Shown one piece after another: positions 11,501 to 35,894 of a stretch of DNA of 64,000 nucleotides. A program made the translations under genes and the position numbers. The stretch is from Zancudomyces culisetae HAW-14-8 (taxonomy: Eukaryota; Fungi; Kickxellomycota): the NCBI GenBank assembly GCA_052426225.1, contig JBNJNM010000023.1, positions 806,001 through 870,000 of the forward strand. Reading direction: 5' to 3'. Positions within the stretch are counted from its first letter, which is position 1, and each line of letters begins with the position of its first letter. The notes under the pieces were generated by a model. It searched no databases and had not been told where the DNA came from. It saw only the letters and a list, made by a program, of their open reading frames with translations.

Positions 11501-14500
11501 ATGTTGTTGGTGTTGGTTTTAACGTTGGTGTGGTCAATGATTTTGCTGATGAAAGTGGTGTGCTAGCTGCTGGTGTACTAGGCGTAACAACTGCTCCTAC
11601 CATGCGTGCCACAGCTGCTTGGACGCTTTGGATTTGTGCTCTACTGCTTGAAGTACTGGTGGGTGTAGGTGATTTCGATTTTGAACTCAACTTTCTTTGT
11701 TTAGTTTGTTTTCGCCTTTGTTTTTTGTCATCCCACTTTTGTTTTGAATGAGTACGGGAGGATGGTACAGCAACTGATGATGATTTTGGCGTTGATCTTA
11801 GCGTTGGTGTAGTTAATGATTTTGCTGATGAAAGTGGTGTGCTAGCTGCTGGTGTACTAGGTGTAACAGCTGCTCCTACCATGCGTGCCACAGCTGCTTG
11901 AACACTTTGGATTTGTGCGCTACTGCTTGAAGTACTGGTGGGTGTAGGTGGTCTTGATGTTGCTTTCGATCTTGCCTTTTGCCTTTCTATTTTTTTTCGC
12001 CACTCATCACCCCACTTTTGTTTTGAATGAGTACGGGAGGATGGTACAGCAACTGATGATGATTTTGGCGTTGATCTTAGCGTTGGTGTAGTTAATGATT
12101 TTGCTGATGAAAGTGGTGTGCTAGCTGCTGGTGTACTAGGTGTAACAACTGCTCCTATCATGCGTGCCACAGCTGCTTGGACGCTTTGGATTTGTGCGCT
12201 ACTGCTTGAAGTACTGGTGGGTGTAGATAGTTTCGATTTTGAACTCAACTTTCTTTGTTTAGTTTGTTTTCGCCTTTGTTTTTTGTCATCCCACTTTTGT
12301 TTTGAATGAGTACGGGAGGATGGTACAGCAACTGGTGATGTTGTTGGTGTTGATCTTAGCGTTGGTGTGGTCAATGATTTTGCTGATAAAAGTGGTGTGC
12401 TAGCTGCTGGTGTACTAGGTGTAACAACTGCTCCTATCATGCGTGCCACAGCTGCTTGGACGCTTTGGATTTGTGCGCTACTGCTTGAAGTACTGGTGGG
12501 TGTAGATAGTTTCGATCTTGAACTCAACTTTCTTTGTTTAGTTTGTTTTCGCCTTTGTTTTTTGTCATCCCACTTTTGTTTTGAATGAGTACGGGAGGAT
12601 GGTACAGCAACTGGTGATGTTGTTGGTGTTGATCTTAGCGTTGGTGTGGTCAATGATTTTGCTGATGAAAGTGGTGTGCTAGCTGCTGGTGTACTAGGTG
12701 TAACAACTGCTCCTACCATGCGTGCCACAGCTGCTCGGATAGTTGGTGATGCTACATACTTTTCAGAAGTGGTGATCAAAGCAGGCATTGAAGAAGTAGG
12801 CATTAGTATTCGAGCTTTTGGTACACTGGTTGCAGTCCTAATATATCTTCTTTTCCTTTTTCTTCTTGGTGTCCATCTATCATAAATATCTTCATCTTCA
12901 TCTTCATCTTTGTTCTCGTTTCTTAATTTCTTTCTCCACTTTTGTTTTGAATAACTACGGGAGGATGGTACAGCAACTGGTGATGTTGTTGGTGTTGGTT
13001 TTAACGTTGGTGTGGTCAATGATTTTGCTGATGAAAGTGGTGTGCTAGCTGCTGGTGTACTAGGCGTAACAGCTGCTCCTACCATGCGTGCCACAGCTGC
13101 TTGGACGCTTTGGATTTGTGCGCTACTGCTTGAAGTACTGGTGGGTGTAGGTGATTTCGATTTTGAACTCAACTTTCTTTGTTTAGTTTGTTTTCGCCTT
13201 TGTTTTTTGTCATCCCACTTTTGTTTTGAATGAGTACGGGAGGATGGCGCAGCAACTGATGATGATTTTGGCGTTGATCTTAGCATTGGTGTGGTCAATG
13301 ATTTTGCTGATGAAAGTGGTGTGCTAGCTGCTGGTGTACTAGGCGTAACAACTGCTCCTACCATGCGTGCCACAGCTGCTCGGATAGTCGGTGATGCTAC
13401 ATACTTTTCAGAAGTGGTGGTCAAAGCAGGCATTGAAGAAGTAGGCATTAGTATTCGAGTTTTTGGTACACTGGTTGCAGTCCTAATATATCTTCTTTTC
13501 CTTTTTCTTCTTGGTGTCCATCTATCATAAATATCTTCATCTTCATCTTCATCTTTGTTCTCGTTTCTTAATTTCTTTCTCCACTTTTGTTTTGAATGAG
13601 TACGGGAGGATGGTGCAGCAACTGATGATGATTTTGGCGTTGATCTTAGCGTTGGTGTGGTCAATGATTTTGCTGATGAAAGTGGTGTGCTAGCTGCTGG
13701 TGTACTAGGCGTAACAACTGCTCCTACCATGCGTGCCACAGCTGCTCGGATAGTCGGTGATGCTACATACTTTTCAGAAGTGGTGGTCAAAGCAGGCATT
13801 GAAGAAGTAGGCATTAGTATTCGAGTTTTTGGTACACTGGTTGCAGTCCTAATATACTTTTTCTTTAATTTTTCATTGCTTTTCCATTTGGAACTTTTTA
13901 TTTTGGACAAATAACTTTGCGTTTTACTAGGTATATTTTTTGTTTTTTTATTTGAGATTGATAAAATTTTTGCATTAGTTGCGACATTAAGTTCAGTGGA
14001 TGACATTGTGCTACTTTTTAAACTTTTTGGCGCTGCAAGGTTTATTGGTGCAATCTTGTCCACTGCTGTGGTTTTTGCTACAGTAAACGCAAATGTCTTT
14101 GTCATTGAACTACTAGTTGCAGTATTTGCTTTTGGTGTTGATATCGGCTTTATAACGCGTATTACTTGTGTTTTTGTTTTACCGCCTACAACATTTATTT
14201 TGATCTTTGCCTTAAATGCATTATTACTTTTGGCCTCTTTAAACGCAGCAATCAAGCCACTAAATGCTGGATCGCTAAATAAGGCCTTTACTTTAGTTTT
14301 TCTGGATGTAGTACATTTGCTGCAACCCTTGCAAGATGTTAAACATCGTTTTGGCTTTAACTCTTTCCAGATTTTACGTTTAGAAAGATCTCGTGTTTGT
14401 GAATAGCAACTTTTAATGCACTTGTTAATGACACCATTATCTTCTTCGCTTTCAATACATTTCATTTTACATTCTATTAGAATCTTTTTTTTAGCCTGCT

Positions 14501-14945
14501 TTATACTACAGCGCTTGAACCTTCTCCTACAATTGGGTAAACGTCTTTCACTTCCTTCTGTGTATTCGTTAAAGCTGTAGGCAAGAGGACTGTAAATTTT
14601 ACTTTCACCTTTATAGTTATCATCTAACTCTAATCTAGACTGACTCAAGTCACTTATACTTTTACGTGCTCCATCTGTATCACTATTTTTATTATTATAC
14701 TTGTAGTATTTTGTTATTGATGCTTCAGGTCTGCTTCCAATTCCATTTGCAAGATTCTTATTGATACCAATATTGCATTTTGTATCTTTGTTCAAGGTAT
14801 TGTGAGATTGTCCGAAACTAGTATCTGTATAACCGATGTGCTCAGAGAGCTGCACTCCCTGTTGGTTTCGCTCGAAAATGTCTATATGTGTCCCACTAAC
14901 CGAATAAGCTACGGATATATACCATCCAAGCTTTAAGTATTTCAT
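8541..14945 (-). CDS. Secreted 2134-aa repetitive, highly basic Ser/Thr/Pro/Ala-rich protein with N-terminal 10-Cys domain
   Basis: Uninterrupted 6.4-kb ORF; signal-peptide-like N-terminus (MKYLKLGWYISVAYSVSG); Cys domain homologous to 34848..35894; in-frame tandem repeats. Confidence 0.9.
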   Translation of the reverse strand: MKYLKLGWYISVAYSVSGTHIDIFERNQQGVQLSEHIGYTDTSFGQSHNTLNKDTKCNIGINKNLANGIGSRPEASITKYYKYNNKNSDTDGARKSISDLSQSRLELDDNYKGESKIYSPLAYSFNEYTEGSERRLPNCRRRFKRCSIKQAKKKILIECKMKCIESEEDNGVINKCIKSCYSQTRDLSKRKIWKELKPKRCLTSCKGCSKCTTSRKTKVKALFSDPAFSGLIAAFKEAKSNNAFKAKIKINVVGGKTKTQVIRVIKPISTPKANTATSSSMTKTFAFTVAKTTAVDKIAPINLAAPKSLKSSTMSSTELNVATNAKILSISNKKTKNIPSKTQSYLSKIKSSKWKSNEKLKKKYIRTATSVPKTRILMPTSSMPALTTTSEKYVASPTIRAAVARMVGAVVTPSTPAASTPLSSAKSLTTPTLRSTPKSSSVAAPSSRTHSKQKWRKKLRNENKDEDEDEDIYDRWTPRRKRKRRYIRTATSVPKTRILMPTSSMPALTTTSEKYVASPTIRAAVARMVGAVVTPSTPAASTPLSSAKSLTTPMLRSTPKSSSVAAPSSRTHSKQKWDDKKQRRKQTKQRKLSSKSKSPTPTSTSSSSAQIQSVQAAVARMVGAAVTPSTPAASTPLSSAKSLTTPTLKPTPTTSPVAVPSSRSYSKQKWRKKLRNENKDEDEDEDIYDRWTPRRKRKRRYIRTATSVPKARILMPTSSMPALITTSEKYVASPTIRAAVARMVGAVVTPSTPAASTPLSSAKSLTTPTLRSTPTTSPVAVPSSRTHSKQKWDDKKQRRKQTKQRKLSSRSKLSTPTSTSSSSAQIQSVQAAVARMIGAVVTPSTPAASTPLLSAKSLTTPTLRSTPTTSPVAVPSSRTHSKQKWDDKKQRRKQTKQRKLSSKSKLSTPTSTSSSSAQIQSVQAAVARMIGAVVTPSTPAASTPLSSAKSLTTPTLRSTPKSSSVAVPSSRTHSKQKWGDEWRKKIERQKARSKATSRPPTPTSTSSSSAQIQSVQAAVARMVGAAVTPSTPAASTPLSSAKSLTTPTLRSTPKSSSVAVPSSRTHSKQKWDDKKQRRKQTKQRKLSSKSKSPTPTSTSSSRAQIQSVQAAVARMVGAVVTPSTPAASTPLSSAKSLTTPTLKPTPTTSPVAVPSSRTHSKKKWRKKLKNENKDEDEDEDIYDRWTPRRKRKRRYIRTATSVPKARILMPTSSMPALTTTSEKYVASPTIRAAVARMVGAVVTPSTPAASTPLSSAKSLTTPTLRSTPTTSPVAVPSSRTHSKQKWDDKKQRRKQTKQRKLSSRSKLSTPTSTSSSSAQIQSVQAAVARMVGAVVTPSTPAASTPLSSAKSLTTPTLRSTPKSSSVAVPSSRTHSKQKWDDKKQRRKQTKQRKLSSKSKLSTPTSTSSSSAQIQSVQAAVARMVGAVVTPSTPAASTPLSSAKSLTTPTLRSTPKSSSVAVPSSRTHSKQKWGDEWRKKIERQKARSKATSRPPTPTSTSSSRAQIQSVQAAVARMIGAAIKSDLAKYKKSVSLTLSPTYLASITPTRTHSKQKWDDEWRKKIERRKARSTTKSKSPTPTSTSSSSAQIQSVQAAVARMVGAAVTPSTPAASTPLSSTKSLTTPTLKPTPTTSPVAVPSSRTHSKQKWGDKKQRRKQTKQRKLSSKSKSPTPTSTSSSSAQIQSVQAAVARMIGAAIKSDLAKYKKSVSLTLSPTYLASITPTRTHSKQKWGDEWRKKIERRKARSTTKSKSPTPTSTSSSSAQIQSIQAAVARMVGAAVTPSTPAASTPLSSAKSLTTPTLRSTPKSSSVAVPSSRTHSKQKWGDEWRKKIERRKARSTSKSRPPTFTDVSSSSTNIQSAQTTVGRIPRALVVTGIFTTSVPSSTPPSLPLSSLSSPSATSFYSRVYSREIWGDEWKKRVEKRKRNIMREHNEVQEKKKMEDPMRSKNAKLLEKQTNRKKWGTGWIKKTALGKTTEKLTTRVSETTTLTSVPISSISVQGLETSGARMSKNIPVPSIKTSITVSTLATSSAGTLYSPVRDVGAPMGLVSISKKMALNVSATPTQTTSNISTVSRKSSSVLAAKLHVGVILPPKPTADGSQSNIVSVPIPVKVFVKVICAPNTVTPVITSTETQ
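9400..13860 (-). repeat. Coding modular tandem repeat array (279-, 366- and 249-bp units)
   Basis: Core recurs at 10078, 10606, 11164, 11530, 12367, 12646, 13012, 13291, 13657 (spacings are sums of 279, 366, 249); all units are multiples of 3. Confidence 0.95.
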
Positions 14946-17271
14946 TTTGTTGGCAGCTTCAAGATGCCACTTTTACGTTGTTTTAATAAGTGGGTGATTG
15001 CACTATTTGGGGTTCACAAAATATTTAATACATTAACACTTTTCGGAATTTTCAATTAAACGAAACCGAATATTATTTTCAAATGACTTTATGTCCAATA
15101 TATATGCGGTTTCTAATAACTTTTAGTTGAATTATAGATTTACAATCCAGAATCTCTAAACAGTCTCTAATGTTTCCTAACACATGATTTGATTATGTTT
15201 ATTGCATATTTATGGAGATTGATCTGGAAGAAAAAGTTGTCTGTCGCGAATGAATTGGCAATTTATATTATTTTATTTGACAATAATGAGCCATTATTGG
15301 AGGATAATATAAAAATTTAAATCGAGACAGTAAATATATTGAAAAGTAAAAAAATGTTATATTATTAGTTGGCCAGAAGCTTGTTTCCTCTTCCTAGCCC
15401 TTCTAGAGAAAGGAAAGTATGGGTTTATATTTTTTTTTGGAGCCGTTCATTTAAAATAACCTCACACGACCACTAAGATGGTAGTCCATTTCTAAATATC
15501 ATATACTATCACAACACAACATTGTTGCAATGATAATATTGTACCTAGACTCTCGGGCCTTTGACTGCTTGGTATTATGTCTTCCTCTTAAGTTACATTA
15601 AAAAACCATGCTTTTCCGGCGCAGCTAGGTAGGTCTGAAATTAACATAAAAATTGATGTTGGCCTGGTACTGCAAAATATCAGGCACAGAATATTCCATT
15701 TCAACTGGTTTATTTGGGGAAGAAGTTGAGTATTATCAGTATTCTGGCATTATAGAATGTTTTTAATTTAAGCGCTTATGGACTGGTTAACATTAAAAAT
15801 AGTGCTGAGTATATTTTAATAAAAAGGATACTATCTAGATTTAAATATTTTCTAACAGACTATATCCAAGGTATTACTATCGATACTTCTTTCTGCTGCG
15901 AGTCGAAATAACAAAAAAAAGTATGAAGTGTACACAAGATAATTACATTGTTGGTGGGGTTAATTTACTATCTGTTTTCTCATTTTTTGGACAACTCTGC
16001 ATATTTTTAGTAAAATATTTAATAGCCATTAGTTTGATAAAATAATTTATACTAGTTTGATTACCCATCAATTTAATGTTTTAAGGAAATGATTTCTACA
16101 ACACCAAGTTAATAATATATTAGATTGGAAGTAATACAAAGTACGTTTATTACAGTAGAATTTCAGGCCATTCTATTATAACCCACCATGTGCGTGGTCC
16201 AATTGACCATACTTATCTGTAATTAGACAGCAATAAAAGTGTGATATTTTTGTATTGAAAATATGAGACAGATGGTGCTAAAACTATACCCAATTATCGA
16301 TGTTCAAATACTAATTTAATTTGTTGTGGGACTGATATATGTTTTTTAATTCACCATATCTAGCATTACCAGTATATTTTATATAAAGTTCAGCAATTGT
16401 AGGCTCAAGTTTGAATATACAAATTATAATTAACTTAAACAACTTGATACTATATTGCCACGAATCTGACAATAATAACTAGCTATCACCATTACTTTAA
16501 AACACAAAATAAGAGATTAGGAAGAAAAAATACTCAGCAATATCAATAAAAAAAGAATATACTAGAAATACAAACAAATATATAGCTTTTATAGATATAT
16601 TTTGGTTATAGAGAATTTCTACTAAAGAGCATCGGTTTAGTACTCAAGAGAAGGGGGAGGGCTCTTATAAAATACCAAGGATTAAAGCCTAAATTAATAA
16701 AAATATCACCTAGTTCAATTCATAAAGTCCCCAACAATTCTAGAAGTGCAAACTTTTAGCTCTTTCTTGCATTAACTAATAAAGTTAGAGATTTAATTTA
16801 ACGCAAGATGTATTGCATACTGTTAATGTATTATAAATAAGATAGGGTTTATTCTTAATAAAATTATTTAAGGTATTAATCTGGTGAAGCTGGTATAGTG
16901 CGAGCTTTTAGGTTTGATTCTGACAGCCATGCTAAGATTACCGACTACTTAACCGAACCTTATTTTTAATAAAAATGCCTGCCAAATGTTATATATAAAT
17001 ATATATATATAATCATTGAGAACTAGAAAATAATAACTACAAATAAATAATATTAAATCTCACCAAGTGAATTCATCTGGAAAGTATAAAGTTTTCCTTA
17101 TTACTACATTTATTGTACCTTACATTCCACAAATCGTTTTTAATTTTCCCAATATCTCGTCTTAGACCTCGATTTTATTGTGGATATTAGTAATCGTATG
17201 AACAGTATTCTTCCCTGAATGGAACTTGCTTATATAATAAAAAGGAAGTAATAAGCATGCTAGAATAATAC

Positions 17272-17597
17272 TGTAATGTTTTGTAGATGTTATACTTTAC
17301 CCAATATTCGTTATAGCTAATGTAACGGCTGAGCTTGGTATAGCACTAATTCTGACAGATATACGCTGGCTATGCATCACTCAACCTTTTCTGCTTACCC
17401 TTTACTCTTTACTCTTTATCATGCTATCACTGTTTTAATAATGTAAAATAAAAGTAAACATGATTATTACTGTTTGTTATAACTAAGCACAATGTACATA
17501 AAGAATATATATATGGGTATTTCATGTTAATAAAAGCCAATAATTCCTATTTAAGCTTTTCATTATTGTAGACAAAGGATGTAGCCGTTATACTACA
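17272..17597. mobile_element. Solo LTR, family A, copy 2 (326 bp)
   Basis: TGTAAT...ACTACA termini, 4-bp TSD ATAC (17268-17271 / 17598-17601), homology to 1519..2367. Confidence 0.75.
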
Positions 17598-17671
17598 ATA
17601 CTAAACTGAAGCTTAAATATCAATCAAATCTGAAAAAATAAAAGTAAAATGCTTATAAAATAAAAAATATA

Positions 17672-17752
17672 TGGGACGTAAGTGACTCGAACACTTAACC
17701 TTCCGCTGACCATAGTTGGAGACGGACGCGCTACCAATTGCGCCAACACCCC
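17672..17752 (-). tRNA. tRNA-Trp(CCA) with 8-nt intron
   Basis: GGGGTGTTGGCGCAATTGGTAGCGCG TCCGT CT-CCA-A [CTATGGTC] A GCGGA AGGTT AAGTG TTCGAGT CACTT ACGTCCC A; intron at 37/38. Confidence 0.9.
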
Positions 17753-17756
17753 AGAA

Positions 17757-17826
17757 TGCGTAGACCGGGAATCGAACCCGGGTCTGCCGCGTGGCAGTGG
17801 CAATTATACCACTAAACCATCTACGC
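17757..17826 (-). tRNA. tRNA-Gly(GCC), aberrant anticodon arm (possible pseudo-tRNA)
   Basis: Acceptor GCGTAGA/TCTACGC, D and T arms intact; anticodon stem GCCAC/GCGGC has an A-C mismatch and a 6-nt loop (TGCCAC); 70 nt. Confidence 0.8.
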
Positions 17827-17833
17827 ATGTTTT

Positions 17834-18159
17834 TGTCGTATAATTAGTAGCACCTTATTGTATGAGCACTTTTTCCCAATGGGTTATTCCTCATACAACG
17901 TTTATTAGTTTATTATTAGTCTATTTATAGTATTTAAACAATCAGAGGCATACACCTACTGATTATTTAGTTAAGAATTGCAACAATATCATAAGGACAT
18001 GGTTGCAATTGTCAATCATAGCAGCTAATAGCTACACCACGTTGTAAACAACCAACGTGGAAAGTTAATCTTAGTACATTTTTCTACATATGAGTATAAA
18101 AATCATGTCAGAGAATCTAAATAAAAAATCATCAAGTAGTTTAATAAAAATTCACTACA
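17834..18159 (+). repeat. 5' LTR
   Basis: TGTCGTATAA...TTCACTACA, direct repeat of 22730..23055. Confidence 0.97.
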
Positions 18160-18322
18160 GTTTTGGCGCTCCTTAATTACTAGCAACATACTATATTTTA
18201 ACTTTAATTACAAAAAATTATACCTTACGTTTAAACCAAAAATATATAATTTAAAAAAAAAAAATAAAATAAAATAAAAAAAAAAAAAAAAACCTATAAA
18301 AACAAAAACTCTATTAAGTAAA

Positions 18323-18925
18323 ATGATTGGATCAAGAAACTTTAACATTAGCTCTCGTGAACCCACACTATTTACTGGACAACCTGACCAAAACCCGTAC
18401 ATTTGGCTAAGAAGGTATGAGCTGTTTGCCAAGTTTGAAAATTTTTCGGATACTGAAAAGCTCGAATACGTCGAGCTGTACTTTGACGAAAGACCTCTAT
18501 TCTGGTACCAACGCATCATTAAAAGTGCAACCACTTGGGATAAATTCAAAGAAGAATTTATGAGCAAGTACAACCTACAAGATACTGAGATAAATTCATG
18601 GAGAACGTTACAGTTGCTGCGACAAGGACAGCAAGAAGACCTGGATGAGTTCATTTTTAAAATTGAAAAACTATTCAAGGCTTCAAATATTACCTCTGAG
18701 GACATAAAGTTTAAATGCCTTGTCAGCTCTATACTTCCCAAATATCAGGAAATTATACTCAAAAAAAAGGATATTACTTACACTGAAGCTGTTGAATGTT
18801 CACTGGAAAAAGAAAAAGAGGATAAAAATTGCACATCGGAGATTCGAAGCAAGTTTTTGGACCAAGTACAAGCACCTAACAAGTCAGGGTTAAATAACAG
18901 TGAAGTTAATGAAGTAGAGAATTAG
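18323..18925 (+). CDS. gag: Gag capsid part (reading frame broken at ~18915-18922)
   Basis: Retrotrans_gag-like motifs (FTGQPDQNPYIWL, TWDKFKEEF, LRQGQQEDLDEF). Confidence 0.85.
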   Translation: MIGSRNFNISSREPTLFTGQPDQNPYIWLRRYELFAKFENFSDTEKLEYVELYFDERPLFWYQRIIKSATTWDKFKEEFMSKYNLQDTEINSWRTLQLLRQGQQEDLDEFIFKIEKLFKASNITSEDIKFKCLVSSILPKYQEIILKKKDITYTEAVECSLEKEKEDKNCTSEIRSKFLDQVQAPNKSGLNNSEVNEVEN

Positions 18926-21900
18926 TTAAGGAATTAATAATTAATCACCCAAATCAAAACCAAACAAAAAATAAACAACACCCCACATTTAAAAATAACC
19001 AACCAGACGTGGAGATTAAATCTCAAATAAAATCCTGCATGTACTGTAAACGAGAAGGACACACTAGCTCAGAATGCCGTTCAGCCCCGTGGAACAGAAA
19101 AAACAGAACCGATGGAAGCAATAATCACAAAGGCGTACAGTGCATTGAAGTTTACCCTACTGAAGATAAAAACCTGGAGGAAGTTGAATTGGAAATACAT
19201 GAAACAAATCACCTTGAGATGATGAGAATTGAAGATACATGGAACGAGTTAAGCACATTGGAGAAAAGAAAACTTCTTGACCTTGATAGACCTGATAAGA
19301 TAAAAATCAGACGCAGCCACGAAGAGCCTACAAACCACACCTACTATAATAGGTACCAAGGAAAACAAAATTATTCAGTAATGAGAAACTTACATAACGT
19401 TAGAGCTGATATCACAATTGGGCAGCTAATTGAAGTATGTCCAGCAGTTAGAGAAGAGCTCAACCAGGCAAGCACAAGCAAAGTGAACATTAAAACAATG
19501 GACGCCCAATCTAGAAACTCAAACTGCAAGACAATAGTTACGGTTAACGGAGTTAAGTACCAAGCTGTTGTAGATACAGGCGCAGCCTGTAGCATAATAT
19601 CTAGAGGGTTAGCGCAGTTAATGAAGATGCAAAACACTTCCACTACTAGTGAAACCATCGTAACAGCAGATGGAGCTAACCATCAAATTAAATACAAAGT
19701 AGTTGGGGCACCTATAACAATTAATGGAAAAGAATATATAGCAAACTTACTTATACTGGAGATAGATACACACTCACTGGTGCTTGGCACGGATTGGTTA
19801 AAGCTTCATGGCGCAATCATCAATATGAACACCTCTACTTTATCACTTCCAAAAGATAATACGGTAGCACACATACCATTTTCTACAGTTAAAAAATCAA
19901 ATATATTTTATCAAAACGGTGAAGAGTTTATAGGAATTGCAAAAGAAGTAAATAAAATTGAATTTAATGAGACACAGGTTCCTGAAATAATTTCTGAGGT
20001 GATTAACCGTAATTCAAAAATATTAGCCAATTCAATTGAAGAATTAACACACACAAATGCCGTCGAACATTCAATTGATACTGGCAATGCAAATCCAATA
20101 AAATCACGACCCTATAGAATTCCCAACACAATGAAAGATTTAGTGAGAGAAGAAATTAAAAAAATGAAAGAAGCGGGAATCATTGAAGAATGCTGTTCTG
20201 ACTGGTGTTCTCCGGTCGTTACAGTATGGAAAAAAAATGGTAAAATACGTATTTGCTCTGATTATCGCAAGTTAAATGCGGTAACAAAAAAAGACACCTA
20301 CCCCCTGCCAAATATTGAAGATCTGTTTGATGCACTATCGGGAGCCAAAGTCTACAGTAGTTTAGACGCACTGTCGGGCTTTTGGCAAGTGCGTATTAAA
20401 CAAGAAGACAAATTAAAAACAGCATTTTCATTTCCTGGTGAAGGCTTGTATTGCTATAATGTTATGCCTTTTGGGCTAACAAATAGCCCAGCCACATTCC
20501 AGAGACTTATGGAAAAGGTTTTGGCACCATACCTCTGGCGTTTTGTCGTTGTTTTTATTGACGATATTGTAGTATATTCTAACTCCATTCAAGAACATGC
20601 TATACACCTACAACTATTGTTTGACTTACTTTCTGATGCTAACATTAAACTTAATAGCGACAAATGCAGTTTCTGTAAAGAAAAAATAAGCTATTTAGGA
20701 CACTATATTTCTGCTAACGGATTAGAAACAGACCCAAGTAAAGTTAATACAATAAGCCAAATCAAATACCCATCCAACATAAAAGAGTTACAAAGTTTTC
20801 TTGGCATGACCGGTTACTATAGAAAATTTATTAAAGATTATGCATCAACTGCCAAACCATTAACTGAACTATTAAGAAAAAACAAAATTTGGTCTTTCGA
20901 AAAAGATTGTATTGTGGCTGTAGACATACTAAAAGATAAACTTAAAAATGCACCAACACTTAGTAGACCTTTATGGGACACACCATTTACCCTAACAACA
21001 GACGCTTCGCATCAGGGTCTAGGTGCCATACTAAGTCAATTTGTTAACAATAAAGAACTGCCAATTGCGTTCGCTTCACGGTCCCTAACAAAAGCTGAAA
21101 AAAATTATTCGGCCACCCACCTGGAGGGTCTTGGTGTAATATGGGGAGTGAAATACTTTCGAAACTATCTATGGGGAAATAAGTTTACCATTGTCACAGA
21201 CCACACTGCATTGATTAAGTTATTTTCGTCCACAGAAGCCACTGGCAGACTGGCACGATGGTCACTTATACTTCAAGAATACGAGTTTAACATAGTACAT
21301 AGAAAAGGTACAAAAAACCCTGCAGACTGTTTATCTCGGAGCGTAGATCACACAGTTGACACGGAAACCATGGAAGATTGTACTTTCGACACTGCTGCGC
21401 TATTCACACTCGAACTTAAAGAATATAACGACATACTAAACTATATAGAGCATTCGGAATTACCTTCACGCTTACCTACTGAGTACAAAGAGTGGATAAA
21501 ATCACAATCATCAAAATATATATCAAATTCTAACATTATGTACTCACATAGTAAAAAATACGGAAATAGGGAGGTACTACATAGTAAAAATGCGCTTGAA
21601 AAAATTAGAGAAATACACGATCAGAACCATTTCGGAATATCAAACACATGGGATTTAGTTAAAAAACTATATTCTGGACCTAACCTATTTAATTTAGTAA
21701 AAAAAGTGGTAAATTTTTGTGAAATCTGTCAAAAATACAACGAAAGCAGAAGAGTAAAAAATCGAATGATACCGATAATTGCCTCAGCTCCATTTGAAAT
21801 TGTGGGTATAGACACAATTGGTCCAATTAGCCCAATATCTGATTCCGGTAATCAATATATTATAACTGCAATAGATTATTACACTAAGTGGCCAATTATA

Positions 21901-22743
21901 AGAGCAGTAGACAACATTCGAACTGAAACAATAATAAATTTCCTAGTACATGATGTAGTAGCAAACTACGGTATTCCAAAAAAGTTAATATCGGATAGAG
22001 GGACTTCATTTATAAGTACAGATGCAGATGAGTTTTATAAATTTGTAGGTATAGATCATAGGCCAACCACAGCCTACCAGCCTCAATCAAACGGGCAAGT
22101 GGAGAGGTTAAATAAAACTTTAGTAAATACCTTAGCAAAAATATGTAGACGAGATCGAAAAAATTGGGACAAATATATCTGGAAAGCAGCGTTATGTCTA
22201 AGAACTATGAAACACAGAGTAACTCAAGAGACACCAGCAAAAATGTTATATGGATTTAACATTAGTACACCAATAAATTGGTCAAACATAATTAATAACG
22301 AAAACGAAGAAGAAGCTATAGTTGAACGCTTATCATTTATTAGAGACGAATTACCTACCATAAGAAACCTAGCAGTTCAAAAAATTATTAAAAATAAGCA
22401 ATATGAAAAAACAAGATATGATAAAAATATTAAGGAATATAAGTTTAAAGATGGTGAAATAGTTTTAAAATTAGTTGAAATTCAAAATTCAAAGTTCTCA
22501 GCTGCATGGGAAGGACCATATACTATTATTCGCTCACTAACTAAAGGTACATATATAATTAGAGACGATAAAGGTAATGTCGATCAAGTAAATGGAGATA
22601 GGTTAAAATATTACCATGAAAGATCGGAACTGATTCCAGAAGTTATAGCAAGCAATCTAAGAACAACATTGAGAAGATACAAGTCACAGCCATACTCTAA
22701 CCGGGACGGTCGAGATTCACGGGGGGGTCTGTCGTATAATTAG
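18913..22743 (+). CDS. pol: Gag zinc knuckle + Pol (protease, RT, RNase H, integrase)
   Basis: CMYCKREGHTSSEC; VDTGA; MPFGL, FIDD; TDAS; H..H..CEIC, GIDTIG/SDRG/VER DDE core; WEGPY motif; frame open from 18913. Confidence 0.95.
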   Translation, partial: SRELVKELIINHPNQNQTKNKQHPTFKNNQPDVEIKSQIKSCMYCKREGHTSSECRSAPWNRKNRTDGSNNHKGVQCIEVYPTEDKNLEEVELEIHETNHLEMMRIEDTWNELSTLEKRKLLDLDRPDKIKIRRSHEEPTNHTYYNRYQGKQNYSVMRNLHNVRADITIGQLIEVCPAVREELNQASTSKVNIKTMDAQSRNSNCKTIVTVNGVKYQAVVDTGAACSIISRGLAQLMKMQNTSTTSETIVTADGANHQIKYKVVGAPITINGKEYIANLLILEIDTHSLVLGTDWLKLHGAIINMNTSTLSLPKDNTVAHIPFSTVKKSNIFYQNGEEFIGIAKEVNKIEFNETQVPEIISEVINRNSKILANSIEELTHTNAVEHSIDTGNANPIKSRPYRIPNTMKDLVREEIKKMKEAGIIEECCSDWCSPVVTVWKKNGKIRICSDYRKLNAVTKKDTYPLPNIEDLFDALSGAKVYSSLDALSGFWQVRIKQEDKLKTAFSFPGEGLYCYNVMPFGLTNSPATFQRLMEKVLAPYLWRFVVVFIDDIVVYSNSIQEHAIHLQLLFDLLSDANIKLNSDKCSFCKEKISYLGHYISANGLETDPSKVNTISQIKYPSNIKELQSFLGMTGYYRKFIKDYASTAKPLTELLRKNKIWSFEKDCIVAVDILKDKLKNAPTLSRPLWDTPFTLTTDASHQGLGAILSQFVNNKELPIAFASRSLTKAEKNYSATHLEGLGVIWGVKYFRNYLWGNKFTIVTDHTALIKLFSSTEATGRLARWSLILQEYEFNIVHRKGTKNPADCLSRSVDHTVDTETMEDCTFDTAALFTLELKEYNDILNYIEHSELPSRLPTEYKEWIKSQSSKYISNSNIMYSHSKKYGNREVLHSKNALEKIREIHDQNHFGISNTWDLVKKLYSGPNLFNLVKKVVNFCEICQKYNESRRVKNRMIPIIASAPFEIVGIDTIGPISPISDSGNQYIITAIDYYTKWPIIRAVDNIRTETIINFLVHDVVANYGIPKKLISDRGTSFISTDADEFYKFVGIDHRPTTAYQPQSNGQVERLNKTLVNTLAKICRRDRKNWDKYIWKAALCLRTMKHRVTQETPAKMLYGFNISTPINWSNIINNENEEEAIVERLSFIRDELPTIRNLAVQKIIKNKQYEKTRYDKNIKEYKFKDGEIVLKLVEIQNSKFSAAWEGPYTIIRSLTKGTYIIRDDKGNVDQVNGDRLKYYHERSELIPEVIASNLRTTLRRYKSQPYSNRDGRDSRGGLSYN

Positions 22744-23055
22744 TAGCACCTTATTGTATGAGCACTTTTTCCCAATGGGTTATTCCTCATACAACGTTTA
22801 TTAGTTTATTATTAGTCTATTTATAGTATTTAAACAATCAGAGGCATACACCTACTGATTATTTAGTTAAGAATTGCAACAATATCATAAGGACATGGTT
22901 GCAATTGTCAATCATAGCAGCTAATAGCTACACCACGTTGTAAACAACCAACGTGGAAAGTTAATCTTAGTACATTTTTCTACATATGAGTATAAAAATC
23001 ATGTCAGAGAATCTAAATAAAAAATCATCAAGTAGTTTAATAAAAATTCACTACA
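22730..23055 (+). repeat. 3' LTR
   Basis: Direct repeat of 17834..18159. Confidence 0.97.
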
Positions 23056-23738
23056 TTTTTTTTTAAACTTAAAAAAAATTATATTCTATCTTTATCTTTG
23101 GTTTAATTTAAAATAATATATTTGTAGTTATTATTATGTATATTTTTTTGAAATAACCACTCTAACTAAAAACTTCAATGGTTCTAGATATCCTTAACTA
23201 TATTTCAATAAATGCAAATGAGACGCACTTGTATATTTTTACATGTAATTAAATCTGCCATTTTAGTATTTGCTAAATCCATGACATCCCCAAGCCTTTG
23301 TTTTAATATCTGTTGTTTATAAATATTATACCGAGCCTGGTTTGGATTTCCACTTAGCTATACCATTGTTTCATATTACTGATTTAAAATTCAAGTACAT
23401 CAACTTTTTAGGATTTTTTGGCAATTAAGTTGTTTGTAAAATTAGTTAAATTTATACTGAGAGTGTTTATAAGCTCAATAAATGGATGTGCTGAGTTACA
23501 AGGTTATTAGTTTTTCTTTCCCATCTGAATGGTCAGTATTTTATTATTACTACTCTTAGCTTTCAGTCATTTTATTGGTATTATTTAATATGTGTAAAAA
23601 AAAATGCATTCATACACAAATAGTAGAAAAATATTAAAACCAAATCTCTAGATAATACTAGTAAGTATCAAGTACATTATTTTCTTCAAAAGCAACCATT
23701 TGCGTTAAGGGTTGAGAGCAAACAAGTAAAGATAGGAT

Positions 23739-26995: not shown

Positions 26996-27244
26996 CTAGA
27001 CATGGAAATTCGAGTACATGCCGTTAATCAGTGCTTGTCGCTTGATTATTTGGAGTTGCTTTTTCCAATGGGTCAAAAACTTGCTAATCTCTTCATTTTG
27101 GCTGAGATTTCTGTTGATATGGAAGTCATACTTTGCACGGTTATAAAAGTACTGTCTAAAATTCGAAGCTTGGAATTGATTTGAAGATTTTAGAATATCC
27201 CTATATAGCCTCAAAACTGCCTTTTTTGACTGAGTTTGTGACAT
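26996..27244 (-). CDS. ISD11: LYR-motif protein, Isd11/LYRM4-like
   Basis: LRLYRDIL, F..SNFRQYF, IKRQALINGMY motifs; 82 aa. Confidence 0.8.
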   Translation of the reverse strand: MSQTQSKKAVLRLYRDILKSSNQFQASNFRQYFYNRAKYDFHINRNLSQNEEISKFLTHWKKQLQIIKRQALINGMYSNFHV

Positions 27245-28139: not shown

Positions 28140-28290
28140 ATGTATTTATTTAGTGTGTATATATTTAGTGTATATTTATTTAGTGTATATTTATTTATAT
28201 ATGTATTTATTTATATATGTATTTATTTATATATGTATTTATTTATGTATGTATTTATTTATGTATGTGTGTGCGCGTGTATATATATCA
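28140..28290. repeat. Low-complexity AT microsatellite (TATTTATATATG-like)
   Basis: Degenerate short tandem repeats. Confidence 0.8.
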
Positions 28291-29407: not shown

Positions 29408-31279
29408 ATGAGCGAAGGAATAACAAAAATGATAACAGGACTTCCAACAGCAATCACAATAATATCAACATTAGTGGTGATAATTTTGACACTTGGGGGG
29501 ATAGGGCTCGTGGTAGCCTCGCATAGAATAGGAGAAAAACGAGTTAAAGCGGTGTTGGTTACAGGAAATCAACAAGTTAACGAGGATGAAATTATTGATC
29601 AACGAGAGTTTCTAAGATTGCATTTTTTAAGAAAAAATAAGGCGATCGAAACAAAGTATGGGAATAGCCGGATAGCGCTGTTCCAGAAAGAGGTGCTCAA
29701 CGGAGTTAAGAAACTGGAGAGTATGGGTGCTTTGGAGCAAATTACTCTTGGAGCGTTTTATTTACGAGAGAATAGAAAGAGCAGTAGTAGGGATACAGTG
29801 TGGCTAGAGTTTTTGAAGGCAGTGAGTCAGGGTAAGCAATGGGGCAAGTCGAAGGGAGAAGGGATACGAGAGCTATATAAAAAAGCGGTATGTAGCTGGG
29901 GGTGTACATTTGTGGACCGAGAGTTGTTGGATATGCAAAGCAGTCAGCTAGAAGTGAACACACTGATATGCGTAGATACGGGAAAGATGCTGAGAACAAC
30001 AGTACTTCGGTCGGCTATAGCACCGCTGGTGAATCCTAGCGATAAAGAGTTTGATACGGTGGTGACAGCGTTTAAGAAGCTGACGGATGTGTCGCATTGG
30101 GGATTGGGGCTGATTGGGTATTTTTCGTTTGGGCTTTTGCGAATGTTTTTGAGGTGGTTGATGGAAACAGAGCTGAATATAGTGTACAAATTGGTGGAAA
30201 ATACTATGCAAAAAAGAGGAGTTGGTAGCAAGGACTATCAATTTTATTTGGAAAACAAAAAACTATTTGAGGACGAAGTAGTGTATCGGATTATTTCATT
30301 TAATGCACAGACAGCATCGCATCTGATTACCACATTCTATGATGTTGCAACACACGATTCGATCAAGAAGAAGCTGAAGCGGGAACAAAAGGACAACTCA
30401 ATGGATCCAGAGAAATTCATGAATGTATGCGACCAGCTTGACCAGACCAGCACGCCTGGACCCAAAAAGGATGGCGATTATCCGCTAAATGTGCCAGGTG
30501 GTGGAAGACATCTGCTGCAAAAGAGCGACGTTATGCACAATAAAGTCGCAGATCTCAATATGCTGACTCTTAAAATGGTGCAGGCCATGAAGCTGCTGTC
30601 GGCATGTGTGCTAGAGTCGTATCGGCTATGTCCGCCAGTGTGTTCCAGCCTCTGGGTTCTTAACAAGACTATTACCACCAGCTCTGATGACCAAATTTTG
30701 GCTCTGTTGAAGGAACTTTCTGTCCTCAACAAGGGCGATTACTTGGGTTTCTGTTCCTCTGCTGTCTATGAAATCGAAACTGACCCTCTCCTCTCTACCT
30801 CTTCTCCTTCCCTTTCCTCTGATCCTCCTTCCTTTGACAGTTCTGACCCCAACCGTTCTTCTCCTTCCAAATCAGACTCGGCTCTTTCGCCCGATCTTCC
30901 CGACTCCGATTCTTCCTCCACCGAAAACTCCACCCTCAATTTCCACAACCCCACTTCTGACCCTGTCAACCCTTATTTTACCACCAACACCAGTCCCCGC
31001 ACCACATCTTCACCCAACGAGCCTCTTGGCTTCTCTGTCTATTCCCCTCTCAAAAACTATTCCCGAAACATTGCTTTCCATCGTGACTTGGAGGCTTTGA
31101 ACTCCAAAGACTACTCTCTCAACCTTGACTTTATCCGCACTTTTATTTCCCACTTGTTGCAGCGAGCTGACTACTCTACTTTTGAGTGGGGAAAGCCTGA
31201 AGTCAAGGATTCTTTCTTGCTCTATCCCTGTCTATATAACTCTAGTATGCTTTTTAGGCTGACTGCTAAGAAATCTTGA
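29408..31279 (+). CDS. Highly divergent cytochrome P450-like protein lacking the heme-ligand motif
   Basis: N-terminal TM anchor; I/J-helix-like FNAQTASHLITTFYDVATHDSIKKKLKREQ; K-helix LSACVLESYRLCPPV (ExxR); no FxxGxxxCxG. Confidence 0.65.
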   Translation: MSEGITKMITGLPTAITIISTLVVIILTLGGIGLVVASHRIGEKRVKAVLVTGNQQVNEDEIIDQREFLRLHFLRKNKAIETKYGNSRIALFQKEVLNGVKKLESMGALEQITLGAFYLRENRKSSSRDTVWLEFLKAVSQGKQWGKSKGEGIRELYKKAVCSWGCTFVDRELLDMQSSQLEVNTLICVDTGKMLRTTVLRSAIAPLVNPSDKEFDTVVTAFKKLTDVSHWGLGLIGYFSFGLLRMFLRWLMETELNIVYKLVENTMQKRGVGSKDYQFYLENKKLFEDEVVYRIISFNAQTASHLITTFYDVATHDSIKKKLKREQKDNSMDPEKFMNVCDQLDQTSTPGPKKDGDYPLNVPGGGRHLLQKSDVMHNKVADLNMLTLKMVQAMKLLSACVLESYRLCPPVCSSLWVLNKTITTSSDDQILALLKELSVLNKGDYLGFCSSAVYEIETDPLLSTSSPSLSSDPPSFDSSDPNRSSPSKSDSALSPDLPDSDSSSTENSTLNFHNPTSDPVNPYFTTNTSPRTTSSPNEPLGFSVYSPLKNYSRNIAFHRDLEALNSKDYSLNLDFIRTFISHLLQRADYSTFEWGKPEVKDSFLLYPCLYNSSMLFRLTAKKS

Positions 31280-32035
31280 TTTAATCTCCTCTCGTTTATC
31301 CTTTTTTTACATTTACTTATTTATTTATTCATTTATTTATCCAATTTTCTTGTTTTAGAATTTGTTTTTATTTTTTCATATGCCCACTGTTTTGTTAACT
31401 ATATTCTGTCCTTTATAAAGCCTTTGAATATCTTGAACTCTGTAACCTCTTTATTTTCTTTTATTACCATACTTTTGACCTGAAATCAATCTTCGTATGC
31501 GTGATTGATAAATAGACTATGATTTCATTTGCATTTCTTGGTTTCAAATTGGGATATTAATGCTACACTTTACTTGAGTGTAGCTATTGGTAAATAATAA
31601 TAAAAATTCTCACTTTTCCACCAATTCCTCTTCTCCTCCTTTCTCCTTCTCCTTTCCTCTTCTCCTTTCTCCTTCTCCTTTCCCCTAGCTCCTTCCCCTA
31701 ACTCCTTCCCCTAACTCCACCTGCTTTCCAAAGATAACCCCATTTACAAAATAAACATACGTTTCCTCTTTTATTTTATTAACTTTGTGTTAACAAATTA
31801 ACTTTTAATATCAATAGCTAAAAATAAAAAAGCTCTATTTTATTCAAAGCTTTACACAAATTAGACCATAAGAATAATCTTTACACATCACCTCCACTTT
31901 CTTTCCTCACACACATCACCCCCCTGATCTTTCTAATTATAGAATACTACTCGATAAATAAGACATTCACATTCTATTTCACTTTTTTATTCTTTTATTA
32001 ATATTTTAGAGAGCTAAAAAAATACATATATAAAA

Positions 32036-34598
32036 ATGTCGGACAATCCTCTATCAAAAATAACCTCGTTGAAAATACTCGATCCGATCATGGGCATAGG
32101 CAAAAACAAGTCGCCGTTGCTCACTTTCTTGCTTGGTACTGTCGCTGGAGTGATTTCATGCTACACCATTCTAAAGGCTCTAGCATTGGCCCAACGGCAG
32201 CAGAAACACAATAAGAAAACTAAAGACCTTGCAAACGAATCAAGCAGTGGCAATTCTACTCGTAGATTGCGAAACAGGCGGAGAAGCAGTAGCGGATTTG
32301 CATCTCGCTACTCAAGCTATGCAGACTACGTTAATCGAAATGTAAATGACACTAATAATGAGGCAGGCGATAGTTCCGAAGATTCTAATAGAAGAACCAG
32401 AAGAATGGGAGTGGTCTTTGAAAATTCAGGTAAGTTTATCATATATATTATCTTATCCTCTTCTTTTTTTCTTTCTTGTATCACTATTACTTTTTTTTTA
32501 TTCACTCTAATCCCCCCGCCCCGCCCCCGCCTCCCATTCCCTTTTTTTACAATTTCTTTTTTAAAAAAATAAAATAGAAAACGAAACATCAGAAAATACT
32601 CAGTTACATAATGGCAACAATTATTCATCTGAAGGGCAAGAAGAAACAAATTTACCAAGCCAATTCACAGAACTTAGTGCAAATCCAGCTCAACAAGAAT
32701 CTACCACAACTGCTGGTACAGCAACAAATGTAGAAACCGACACTCCCCAAAATTCTCAAGAACAAGGGTCTGGGCTGGAACAAGATCAACAGAACGATTC
32801 CGAAGAGGAGTACCAGATGATCCTGGGTGCATTAGATACTGTCTTTGGAAGGTTGAATGAAAGTACAACAAATATACGAGGTTCTGGTTCTGGTTCTGGT
32901 GGAGGAGGTAGTAGTGGTAGTGCATCATTGCCAGATGCACACGATGAAACGAGACGGCTCCGACGATCCAATGCAATAAGTATGAAATCCACAAACAAGA
33001 GCGGAGGTTCAGGCAAAGGTAAGGATTATGGAATCGAAGAGGATAGTACCATGCTAGAACTACTACAAACTGTAGCAGAAAACAAGAGCCGCAGACACGC
33101 AGTCGTTCACCGCGGCGTAACCTGTGACGAATGTAACACTTGTCCGCTGAGAGGTGTGCGGTATAAATGTGCACAGTGCGGTGATTTTGATTTGTGTGAA
33201 GTTTGTGAGAGTAAAAATATACATCGCCACCATATTTTTATCAAAATCAAGATTCCTACCCCGCCAATGATGAACAGTACTGTACCACTGTTGGATTGTT
33301 TCTACCCTGGTGAGCTTATTCTGCAGCATTTACAGCCACAGCGGCACGATAATGACGATGAAAATGATGATGGTAATGCTGTTGGCAGCCGTGGTGGTGG
33401 CTACAAATATGAAATGGATTATCTACTCAACAAAAACTTCAAAGATTATTTGAAAAAAATCGGCCAGAAGCAACGCAGTCTAAAGGTTCAAATCAAATTC
33501 TCACTACACGAAATATATTCTTACTACGACATGTACTGCTCTCTTGCCGGTCTGCGCACCATAGACAACAAGTACCACAACGAGTCCAACAATACTCATA
33601 GTGATGAAAGTATCATGGCTGACGGAGTCGACTACAACACGTTTTTGATATGCCTGGGCAAGTTTGGTAACAAAAACTCATACATCACCCAGCTGCTGTT
33701 TCGTTTCTATGACGACAATGACGATGGCCTGATCTCGTTTGACGAAATGATTATTGGTTTGAATCTTCTAACCCGCTCTCCACTCAACGATTCCCTCAAG
33801 GTTTCTAGAATTTTCAAACTTTTGGATTCTAGAAAAAACAACTTTGTATCCAAATCAGATATTGCCAACCTTTTGGTTTCTGTCAATCTGTACCATAACT
33901 TCCATGTCTCAGAAATGATGAACAACCTCGAAATGGGTTCCATCGTCAACTACTCCTCAATTCTCTCTGACCAGCCAAGCTCTGCCGCCTTCACTGCAAA
34001 TATTTCTCCCGATGCTCCGTCAGTTCTTGACAAAGAACTTGATGTTCTGAGACACGACATTAATCTATTGCGAAACTCCAACCCTAATCAAACCTCCGCC
34101 TCAAACACAACTTCTACCATCTCCATACTCAACTCCACCGCTGAATCCTCTGATGATACTCATAACCCCGCTACAACAAACATCGACAATGATACCGAAC
34201 TCGATCTACTATCGTCTCTAATCAACAACCCTTCGCTAATCCCTCCTCCCAGCACCCTTCCTCCCGTTTACCTTTCCTCTTCCAAAGATTCGGAAGATAT
34301 TCCGCTCTTACCTACTTCAACTCCTGAACTCACAAACAATCCAGCTACTCAACAAGTTCAAAACACTGAAACTCAGCAACAACAACAACAACGGTCACCT
34401 GACTCACAGACCTCTGACGAGCATTTGATATTAGATTATATGATTTCCGATCTTGTGAGGTCACTAGTCTCGTCTATTTTTAACTCTGCAAATCCCAAAT
34501 ACCCTGAACATGGACTAGATTACCAAGAGTTTGTAAACTTGCTCAAAGTTGATCCAAGAATTGTATTATGGTTTGAGAGTATGGGGCCTATTTTTTAA
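32036..34598 (+). CDS. ZZ zinc finger + EF-hand protein with N-terminal TM (exons 32036-32429, 32578-34598)
   Basis: VHRGVTCDECNTCPLRGVRYKCAQCGDFDLCEVCE; EF hands YDDNDDGLISFDE and LDSRKNNFVSKSD; in-frame GTAAGT...TAG intron. Confidence 0.88.
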
Positions 34599-34847
34599 CT
34601 TTTTTTTTCTTTTATATTTTATCTTTTATCCTTAAACTTCTTTTTTTTCTTTGTAATTTATTTATTTATTTATTTATTTATCTGTTTTACTTTTCTTATC
34701 CCTGTCCCATCACTACAACTCTATTTGAAAAAGTCAAAAAAGCAAAAAGAAAAAAACAAAGAAAACCAAAGAATGAATCAAATGTTGGATTGTTGTGGTA
34801 TCAAGTCATGTCTGTGTATGTGTGTGTGTGTGTATGTGTGTGTGTGT

Positions 34848-35894
34848 TTAGTCGGAACCACGACCACGGCCGCGACCATATCCACCTCCGTATCCACGAC
34901 CATATCCACGGCCATAGTCTCCACGGTCATAATCTCTACGGTATTTTCTGTATCGAGTAGTTGGCTCAGTGCTTGGTGCTGCTGGTGCTGCTGGTGTTGC
35001 TGCTGCTGCTGGTGCTGAGGATATAGCTACTGTACCTGCTGCTGCAGGGATGGATGTTGGTACTGGAGCGTTAGATGCTGGCATGGGTGCGGCTCGCATG
35101 GCCATAGCAGCCACTGGGGCTGGAGCAGCAGCAGCAGCTGGAGCAGCGGATGCCTTGGCACCACCCATACCACTTGATTTTCTCAATTTACGGTAACTGT
35201 CAAGTACACCGTTGCTCTTCAATGCAGCCAAGGCACTCTTTAGCTGGTCGAACTGAGGATCGCTGAACAACTTTGAGACTCTGGCTTTCTTTGATGCCAT
35301 ACACTTTGAACATTTTCTGCATGCTTTGAAGCACTTGTATGGTGCCAAGGCCTTTCTCATCTTCTTGCGAGTGATAGCCTTGCTCTTTTCCTTACAGGCG
35401 GTCTTGCAGCTCTTTTTGAGGGCCAAGTCGCTTATATCCTTGCATTTTGCTGCACACTTCTTGTAATAGGTTCTGCGGAATGCCTTGAGCATACAACGAC
35501 GATACTTGCGCTTGCATCTTCTTACTCCACCACGCTTACCCTTCTTCCAGGCCTCTTTAGGAGCTGATGGGGTAGATGAAGCTGAGGATGAGGGCGCAGA
35601 TGCGGTGGTAAGTGGGAGTCTGCTTACACCACCACTTACAGCTGGACCTGTCGCGGTTGCTTGCAAATTGTTGACAATTTCATTCCATTGGTTCACCTGA
35701 TCATCATTGTTGGATTCATCCATCTCCAAGTTGTCATTTTCAGCAGCATCATACCACATTCCGTTCCCTACGTACTCGCCGTGGACACCGTTCAACAAGG
35801 CTTCACCGCGTTGCTCTCCAATAGCCTGGGCTAATACTGAGAATCCGAGTGATTGCAAAGCAACTGCGTATAATCCAATAGTAATGCTCTTCAT
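34848..35894 (-). CDS. Secreted 348-aa basic protein: 10-Cys domain, Ala/Pro linker, Arg-Gly-Tyr tail
   Basis: Signal peptide; Cys spacing and LFSDP motif shared with 8541..14945; tail DYDRGDYGRGYGRGYGGGYGRGRGRGSD. Confidence 0.9.
   Translation of the reverse strand: MKSITIGLYAVALQSLGFSVLAQAIGEQRGEALLNGVHGEYVGNGMWYDAAENDNLEMDESNNDDQVNQWNEIVNNLQATATGPAVSGGVSRLPLTTASAPSSSASSTPSAPKEAWKKGKRGGVRRCKRKYRRCMLKAFRRTYYKKCAAKCKDISDLALKKSCKTACKEKSKAITRKKMRKALAPYKCFKACRKCSKCMASKKARVSKLFSDPQFDQLKSALAALKSNGVLDSYRKLRKSSGMGGAKASAAPAAAAAPAPVAAMAMRAAPMPASNAPVPTSIPAAAGTVAISSAPAAAATPAAPAAPSTEPTTRYRKYRRDYDRGDYGRGYGRGYGGGYGRGRGRGSD

Follow-up and report, generated by a model that had tools for sequence, protein, structure and literature searches.

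We analyzed a 64,000-nucleotide stretch of the Zancudomyces culisetae HAW-14-8 genome (assembly GCA_052426225.1, contig JBNJNM010000023.1, positions 806,001 to 870,000; hereafter, the window), in which a preliminary description had pointed to a cysteine-rich domain shared by two putatively secreted proteins of 2,134 and 348 amino acids (aa), and found the domain to be the head of an 11-gene family seen so far only in Z. culisetae. The head is predicted to form an alpha-hairpinin-like disulfide ladder and is a new domain family resting on a known structural principle. We tentatively read it as a lineage-specific module carried by secreted proteins that serve as wall, matrix or adhesive, a reading that we place slightly short of an even chance; its main rival is a role in antimicrobial defense.

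One head domain in eleven genes

Judged from the alignment of the two window proteins (34% identity over 87 aa, BLASTP E 8e-13), their common domain is real and the likeness far beyond chance. The cysteine spacing, C-x6-C-x12-C-x3-C-x11/12-C-x3-C-x20-C-x3-C-x2-C-x2-C, and the motif K.KV..LFSDP.F that comes after the cysteine stretch could be read straight off both translations as previously described, and the domain boundaries (Table 1) fit the positions claimed earlier. Signal peptides had also been proposed, and both proteins have hydrophobic N termini with small residues at –3 and –1, a heuristic call that is weakest in the 2,134-aa protein; the dibasic site said to stand just ahead of the domain is the Arg-Arg found near the first cysteine in both. 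Less is left of the A.AxM motif proposed for both tails: it recurs 15 times in the 2,134-aa protein and is loose elsewhere, a low-complexity similarity of doubtful meaning. Residues 1 to 865 of the 2,134-aa protein match a partial NCBI protein of Z. culisetae, OMH80342.1.

We searched the whole genome (27.1 Mb in 25 contigs; a PacBio HiFi assembly of Z. culisetae is described in PMC12611240) with the head domain and then with a profile built from it. Exactly 11 places carry the domain, all at E ≤ 5e-45, and the profile search gave no weaker 12th copy up to E = 1. The two proteins noted originally do belong to a family, then, but the real count is eleven genes. All are single open reading frames (ORFs) and can be sorted into five subtypes: the small genes, seven in number, of 240 to 254 aa and spread over five contigs, and proteins of 348, 528, 1,300 and 2,134 aa. 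The 528-aa member lies on contig 23 near 76 kb (locus L015, 7588–9174, minus strand) and the 1,300-aa member, the N terminus of which resembles that of the 2,134-aa protein, on contig 8 at ∼1.637 to 1.641 Mb (locus L011, 988–4890, minus strand).

The architecture is the same in all 11 members and is made up of a signal-peptide-like N terminus, a poorly conserved pro-like region, one head of 110 to 125 aa, and a low-complexity tail specific to the subtype. Head-domain identity between subtypes is only 27 to 49%. A dibasic site ahead of the domain is found in both window proteins and the seven small paralogues and is missing from the 528- and 1,300-aa paralogues. The epithet "cationic" suits four subtypes, in which the head has a net charge of +22 to +31 and a pI of about 10, but not the 528-aa member with only +9.

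Relatives outside the genome assembly are few. Pfam searches with the full proteins (E ≤ 1) and with the domains of seven members (E ≤ 10) gave no accepted match, the only rows being subthreshold ones to TIL (E 0.02), DUF1087 and Vicilin_N (E 0.84). When 1.84 billion representative proteins were searched exhaustively with an HMMER profile, two matched, both from Z. culisetae, and a word-based protein search gave two Z. culisetae proteins and nothing else. These results agree with the proposal of a new secreted family, and the host is indeed, as conjectured, a Harpellales gut fungus. The 348-, 528- and 1,300-aa subtypes seem to be absent from the 1.84-billion-protein library, where no separate cluster matched them and an exact look-up gave no entry for either window protein. 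Absence from other Harpellales proteomes is weak evidence, because annotation easily misses such genes. Among the PDB sequences, for which all profile-search rows were weak, the best match was 6o3q (E 0.19), a 49-aa chain titled "Vicilin" that is probably an alpha-hairpinin-type vicilin-buried peptide, given its length and PMC12497738.

One small paralogue is 94% identical to OMH84230.1 of Z. culisetae. Another protein from the older assembly of the species, OMH78692.1, is a 183-aa member of the small type without most of the cysteine domain; its sequence jumps from the RR site straight to the last C-x2-C-x2-C and looks like either a deleted copy or an artifact of gene modeling or assembly in the short-read genome.

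The small genes fall into four sequence types (L002; L003; L004/L005; L006–L008), and the duplicated unit common to them comprises the gene with ∼400 bp upstream and 170 to 250 bp downstream. The recent duplicates (L004/L005 and L006–L008) have longer stretches in common, exceeding 3.3 kb for the three most recent copies. That the small copies traveled as cargo of a mobile element was ruled out, the shared unit being short and the flanks examined containing no transposon ORFs. The pairwise ratios of nonsynonymous to synonymous substitution rates (dN/dS) among the seven copies were 0.1 to 0.3 overall, 0.06 to 0.25 in the pro-region and 0.3 to 0.4 in the domain: the seven are real genes under purifying, not diversifying, selection.

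Predicted fold and cysteine ladder

From the domain of the 348-aa protein and a seven-sequence alignment, AlphaFold produced a confident all-helical model (pLDDT 85.5) with six helices at residues 3–31, 39–54, 58–81, 86–91, 95–109 and 116–123. The two CX3C motifs are placed at the end of helix 1 and in helix 2, forming the helix-loop-helix of the alpha-hairpinin type that had been expected from the paired motifs. Flanking this core are a two-cysteine helix extension at its N terminus, the C-x3-C-x2-C-x2-C stretch, and the conserved cysteine-free segment LFSDP.F... In a second model, which covered the full length of a small 12-cysteine protein, the hairpin core was again confident, and the pro-region and tail were predicted as disordered. 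Foldseek found no row at E ≤ 0.001 against the PDB; the top row was the alpha-hairpinin Nigellin-1.1, with a template-modeling (TM) score of 0.73 by target and a root-mean-square deviation of 1.1 over 32 aa at a nonsignificant E of 4.9. A wide structural search with VIA-align returned only generic helical hairpins (Z ≤ 6.4), and in the ESM Atlas, the shape search gave only TM scores < 0.5 and the feature search no usable match.

The alignment shows two forms of the core. Three subtypes have the four-cysteine motif CX3C-Xn-CX3C with n = 11 to 12, while the small and 1,300-aa (12-Cys) members carry exactly C-x3-C-x3-C-x10-C-x3-C-x3-C, the commonest six-cysteine motif of plant alpha-hairpinins (PMC11591084). 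The extra cysteines are located four residues before the first CX3C and four after the second (alignment columns 25 and 55), and since the two are present together in the small and 1,300-aa members and absent together from the other three subtypes, they behave as expected for a third rung of disulfides. In alpha-hairpinins, two or three disulfides (C1–C4 and C2–C3) join the helices; the rungs predicted for the family head are C29–C49, C33–C45 and C25–C53 in model numbering. The tree of the five subtypes has long branches and gives no firm branching order, and a single gain or loss of the pair and two such events are both compatible with it. By helical periodicity, C9 and C16 of helix 1 probably face away from helix 2 and should therefore pair with the C-x3-C-x2-C-x2-C stretch; such pairing would in turn leave two cysteines of the stretch without an obvious partner inside the monomer.

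The plant alpha-hairpinins (Nigellin-1.1, vicilin-buried peptides, MBP-1) have the CX3C-Xn-CX3C motif in common with the family head, down to the exact six-cysteine form in the 12-Cys members, and both are predicted to be helix-loop-helix, basic and derived from secreted precursors (PMC11591084, PMC7191063). However, the likeness in sequence is nonsignificant, at the E values given above for 6o3q and Vicilin_N. Whereas the plant peptides are excised at 30 to 50 aa, the family hairpin has no flanking processing sites and is the core of a 110- to 125-aa domain with four more invariant cysteines and a conserved cysteine-free C-terminal part; the head is also fungal and, unlike the plant peptides, fused to long repetitive tails. 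The likeness is most likely a convergence. We found no report of an alpha-hairpinin-type cysteine ladder in a fungus, nor of such a ladder at the center of a larger domain that bears polymer tails.

Possible roles: extracellular material or defense peptide

The tails differ completely between the five subtypes. That of the 1,300-aa member (1,096 aa; 17% Tyr, 11% Lys, 14% Pro and 26% Ser+Thr) is made of repeats with DNA periods of 63, 171, 234 and 405, including 45 KYY, 17 PTPEKYTTP and 14 SKYYESKYY as well as KYYKSKYYESKYY and PKYRAPKYY, and contains 18 KR/RR sites. In the 2,134-aa protein, 15 AAVARM units with spacings of 83, 93 and 122 aa have basic cassettes between them that contain 25 KR/RR sites in all. 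The 348-aa tail is Ala/Pro/Gly-rich with one KR/RR site and ends in YGR/GYG repeats, the 528-aa tail is Thr/Pro/Val/Ser-rich with no such site, and the small genes have Ala/Pro-rich tails of only 23 to 37 residues. Modular extracellular materials are built in this way, with a conserved, stable and nonrepetitive head joined to repetitive tails that are unrelated.

Under the reading that we favor, the head would be a very stable, usually strongly cationic module by which extracellular polymers are anchored or assembled, either on anionic surfaces or on one another. The Tyr/Lys/Pro-rich, polycationic Ser/Thr-rich and Tyr-Gly-Arg tails would form the bulk of the matrix and be cross-linked by secreted tyrosinases through quinone tanning or cysteinyl-DOPA links, and kexin may cut off the pro-region in the subtypes with dibasic sites. 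Candidate sites for such material are the holdfast, the spore appendage, the spore wall and the hyphal wall, and an adhesive or holdfast function of the family is plausible. The backing from the Tyr/Lys/Pro tail of the 1,300-aa protein, the Tyr-Gly-Arg tail of the 348-aa protein and the secreted tyrosinases is circumstantial. A tyrosine-rich secreted substrate and a secreted phenol oxidase are both encoded in the genome, although this applies to only two of the five subtypes, the 1,300- and 348-aa ones.

The genome has nine tyrosinase matches, with signal peptides in all four examined. One of them, encoding 366 aa with a signal peptide (contig 23, 78896–79996; locus L016, 1897–2997, minus strand), shares its strand with the 528-aa member and is located 1.7 kb upstream of it; with 11 genes and 9 loci in 27 Mb, we estimated the chance of a family gene and a tyrosinase pairing within 3 kb at ∼0.02. 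Tyrosinases are common in Zoopagomycota, and we rejected the idea of a tyrosinase expansion, nine matches being not unusual for the phylum (PMC10079182). For cross-linking of tyrosines by peroxidases, no An_peroxidase or peroxidase match was found in the genome.

Several known materials resemble parts of this arrangement. Spider-silk spidroins also have a conserved helical terminal domain on paralogues with unrelated repeats; the family differs from them in its unrelated fold, disulfide-rich head and lack of a C-terminal domain. Tyr/Lys/Pro and Tyr/Gly/Arg compositions are reminiscent of mussel foot proteins 1 and 3, as well as of the motifs through which plant extensins are cross-linked. Mussel foot proteins (mfp-1, mfp-3 and the Cys-rich mfp-6) and trematode eggshell proteins combine, as does the family, secreted cationic repeats rich in Tyr/Lys/Pro or Tyr/Gly/Arg with Cys-rich parts and secreted tyrosinases. 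The mussel proteins are not homologous to the family, however, and have no counterpart of its head; Tyr-rich tails occur in only two of its five subtypes. In mussel-type glues, dopaquinone made by tyrosinase couples to cysteine thiols (PMC6282983), a chemistry that would join Tyr-rich to Cys-rich parts. The fungal adhesins Als, Flo and Epa, anchored by glycosylphosphatidylinositol (GPI), likewise start with a folded domain that leads into a long repetitive stalk rich in Ser/Thr, but the 348-, 1,300- and 2,134-aa proteins show no GPI-type hydrophobic signal at the C terminus and the head is unrelated to the PA14, Ig-like and Flo11 folds.

Harpellales spores release a glue in the gut, and the sole molecular candidate proposed is a fasciclin protein (PMC5954228). 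A bolder version of the adhesive idea, which we regard as rather unlikely, makes the head the assembly switch of a fungal underwater glue: the head would keep the very different tails soluble in storage vesicles, and when the spore is extruded in the hindgut, a pH or ion trigger would let it dock them on the cuticle and offer thiols or quinone targets for cross-linking by tyrosinase. In that case the family would supply the proteins on which the Harpellales holdfast or spore appendage is built.

A number of observations weigh against a wall, matrix or adhesive module. The small genes are the most numerous subtype, and their short tail is hard to call a matrix polymer; for these almost tailless copies, a role as antimicrobials or free ligands is no worse a fit than one as glue. 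Tyr makes up just 1% of the tail in the 528-aa member, the one beside a tyrosinase. For the Tyr-rich tail of the 1,300-aa member, the protein library yielded no homologue, and the likeness to mussel proteins and extensins is, for that reason, compositional only. Among the four C termini examined with a heuristic, the 348-, 1,300- and 2,134-aa proteins showed no GPI-type terminal hydrophobic stretch and are therefore not classical wall-anchored adhesins, the 528-aa protein being doubtful. We compared upstream k-mers across the five subtypes in search of a shared sequence motif and found none common to all. Finally, the second structural model has low confidence for the C-x3-C-x2-C-x2-C stretch, and the pairing of 6 of the 10 cysteines is not settled.

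The main rival, unlikely in our judgment, sees in the head a large cationic alpha-hairpinin-like peptide that is freed by kexin from an anionic or polar propiece and acts on gut bacteria or competitors; the 348-aa protein and the products of the seven small genes would be the active forms, the long-tailed members being tethered or serving unrelated uses. The layout of the precursor is that of such a peptide, with a signal peptide, a polar or acidic pro-region, and RR or RRVRR directly ahead of the first cysteine of a domain with net charge +23 to +31, and the genome has one kexin gene. The core cysteine motif and the type of fold match plant alpha-hairpinin antimicrobial peptides (PMC7191063, PMC11591084), the small gene occurs in seven near-identical copies and, indirectly, colonization by Z. 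culisetae shifts the mosquito microbiota (PMC7393158). The domain is, however, three times the size of an alpha-hairpinin and its hairpin lacks flanking processing sites, while the pro-region charge of –4 to –6 is too small to balance that of the domain. The dN/dS within the domain gives no sign of diversifying selection, two subtypes have no dibasic site ahead of the domain and one is barely cationic, and tails of 1,100 to 1,900 aa are left unexplained.

The sites of potential cleavage in the large members allow yet another interpretation, to our mind improbable, in which these are precursors of kexin-processed polyproteins, similar to Rep1 and other KEX2-processed repeat proteins (KEPs), and release many Ser/Thr/Pro-rich peptides of ∼80 to 120 aa as a coat for the surface of hyphae or spores, with the head as leader or chaperone. 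To count as a KEP, a secreted protein needs three or more repeats with KEX2 sites between them, and the Rep1 peptides of Ustilago structure the hyphal wall; the large members have in common with them a signal peptide, repeats split by dibasic sites and a possible wall-structuring role (PMC6339444). The 15 AAVARM units and 25 KR/RR sites of the 2,134-aa tail agree with this, as does the kexin gene. The basic cassettes, on the other hand, are not single KR sites but long and variable, the units measure 83 to 122 aa in comparison with 37 aa in Rep1, and only the large members carry repeats, the 528-aa, 348-aa and small tails offering no repeats for processing. We know of no KEP with a folded Cys-rich N-terminal domain, and processing of the tails gives no role to a head under purifying selection. 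Rather than excluding a wall, matrix or adhesive module, the polyprotein interpretation overlaps with it, and for the large tails it is compatible with either that module or an antimicrobial head.

Two further proposals fared worse. A ShKT-type toxin or host-directed effector, blocking channels or modulating host gut cells, is brought up by the automatic UniRef name of the small member OMH84230.1 ("ShKT domain-containing protein") and by the C-x3-C-x2-C spacing of the last cysteines, which we take to be ShK-like, but is highly improbable: none of seven members matched Pfam ShK even at E ≤ 10, the six-cysteine ShKT-like window exists only in the 12-Cys members and is one cysteine short in the 10-Cys members, the predicted long helical hairpins differ from the compact ShK fold, and the fold searches returned no toxin. 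A vanabin-type metal-binding protein, a Lys/Arg-rich, disulfide-laddered helical domain, is scarcely credible, the akin Cys- and Lys-rich helical composition and a weak Vanabin2 row from Foldseek (E 8.8 at 30% identity over 59 columns) being set against the nonsignificance of that match (Foldseek probability 0.11, TM score 0.25 to 0.32), the lack of a Pfam vanabin match at E ≤ 10 and of any supporting biological context.

Genomic surroundings and possible meaning for host colonization

The two family genes of the window are both on the minus strand, and their parts are listed in Table 1.

Table 1. Parts of the two family genes in the window (KD, hydropathy of the putative signal peptide)
Protein	Feature	Position	Strand	Remarks
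2,134 aa	Gene; single ORF, stop codon included	8541..14945	-	
2,134 aa	Putative signal peptide, residues 1-18	14892..14945	-	Heuristic; weak hydrophobic core, KD 1.08
2,134 aa	Pro-like region, residues 19-135; C-terminal end Arg-Arg 4 residues ahead of first Cys	14541..14891	-	
2,134 aa	Cys-ladder head domain (predicted), residues 139-251	14193..14531	-	10 Cys, net +23; profile E 5e-45
2,134 aa	Repetitive Ser/Thr/Lys/Ala/Pro tail, 1,883 aa	8544..14192	-	Net charge +256
348 aa	Gene; single ORF, stop codon included	34848..35894	-	
348 aa	Putative signal peptide, residues 1-24, A-Q-A cleavage motif	35823..35894	-	Heuristic, KD 2.2
348 aa	Acidic/polar pro-like region; ends GKRGGVRR directly ahead of first Cys	35517..35822	-	
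348 aa	Cys-ladder head domain (predicted), residues 127-238	35181..35516	-	10 Cys, net +31, pI 10.3; sequence modeled with AlphaFold, pLDDT 85.5
348 aa	Ala/Pro/Gly-rich tail; last ~35 residues (34851-34955) Tyr-Gly-Arg repeats	34851..35180	-	

Between the two genes, in the region 17671–23059, an apparently intact Ty3/gypsy element lies directly beside two abutting tRNA genes (17671–17827) that ARAGORN reported with irregular anticodon loops and Rfam scored as tRNA. The element has a gag-like ORF (18323–18925) and a 1,244-aa pol ORF (19009–22743) with protease, reverse transcriptase, RNase H and integrase. A 623-aa ORF on the plus strand (29408–31279) had no Pfam match at E ≤ 0.001. Beyond the 348-aa gene, two small minus-strand ORFs of 128 aa (37497–37883) and 107 aa (39727–40050) have signal-peptide-like hydrophobic N termini and are each located downstream of a near-identical duplicated block (38295–38911 and 40436–41100). 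A serine carboxypeptidase S10 gene (42004–43797, minus strand) lies 6 kb from the 348-aa gene; speculatively, its product might trim C-terminal basic residues after cleavage by kexin. Outside the window, a GH81 endo-glucanase gene (locus L011, 6215–8335, minus strand) adjoins the 1,300-aa member.

For the material that attaches Harpellales to the insect hindgut cuticle, the PMC literature that we searched names only the fasciclin candidate (PMC5954228). The family described here provides eleven testable genes with a predicted fold, modular adhesive-like tails and candidate cross-linking enzymes. If the antimicrobial alternative were true, the small copies would represent a new class of fungal antimicrobial proteins at work inside a disease vector's gut. 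In both cases, the answer concerns the way in which a common symbiont of mosquitoes colonizes its host.

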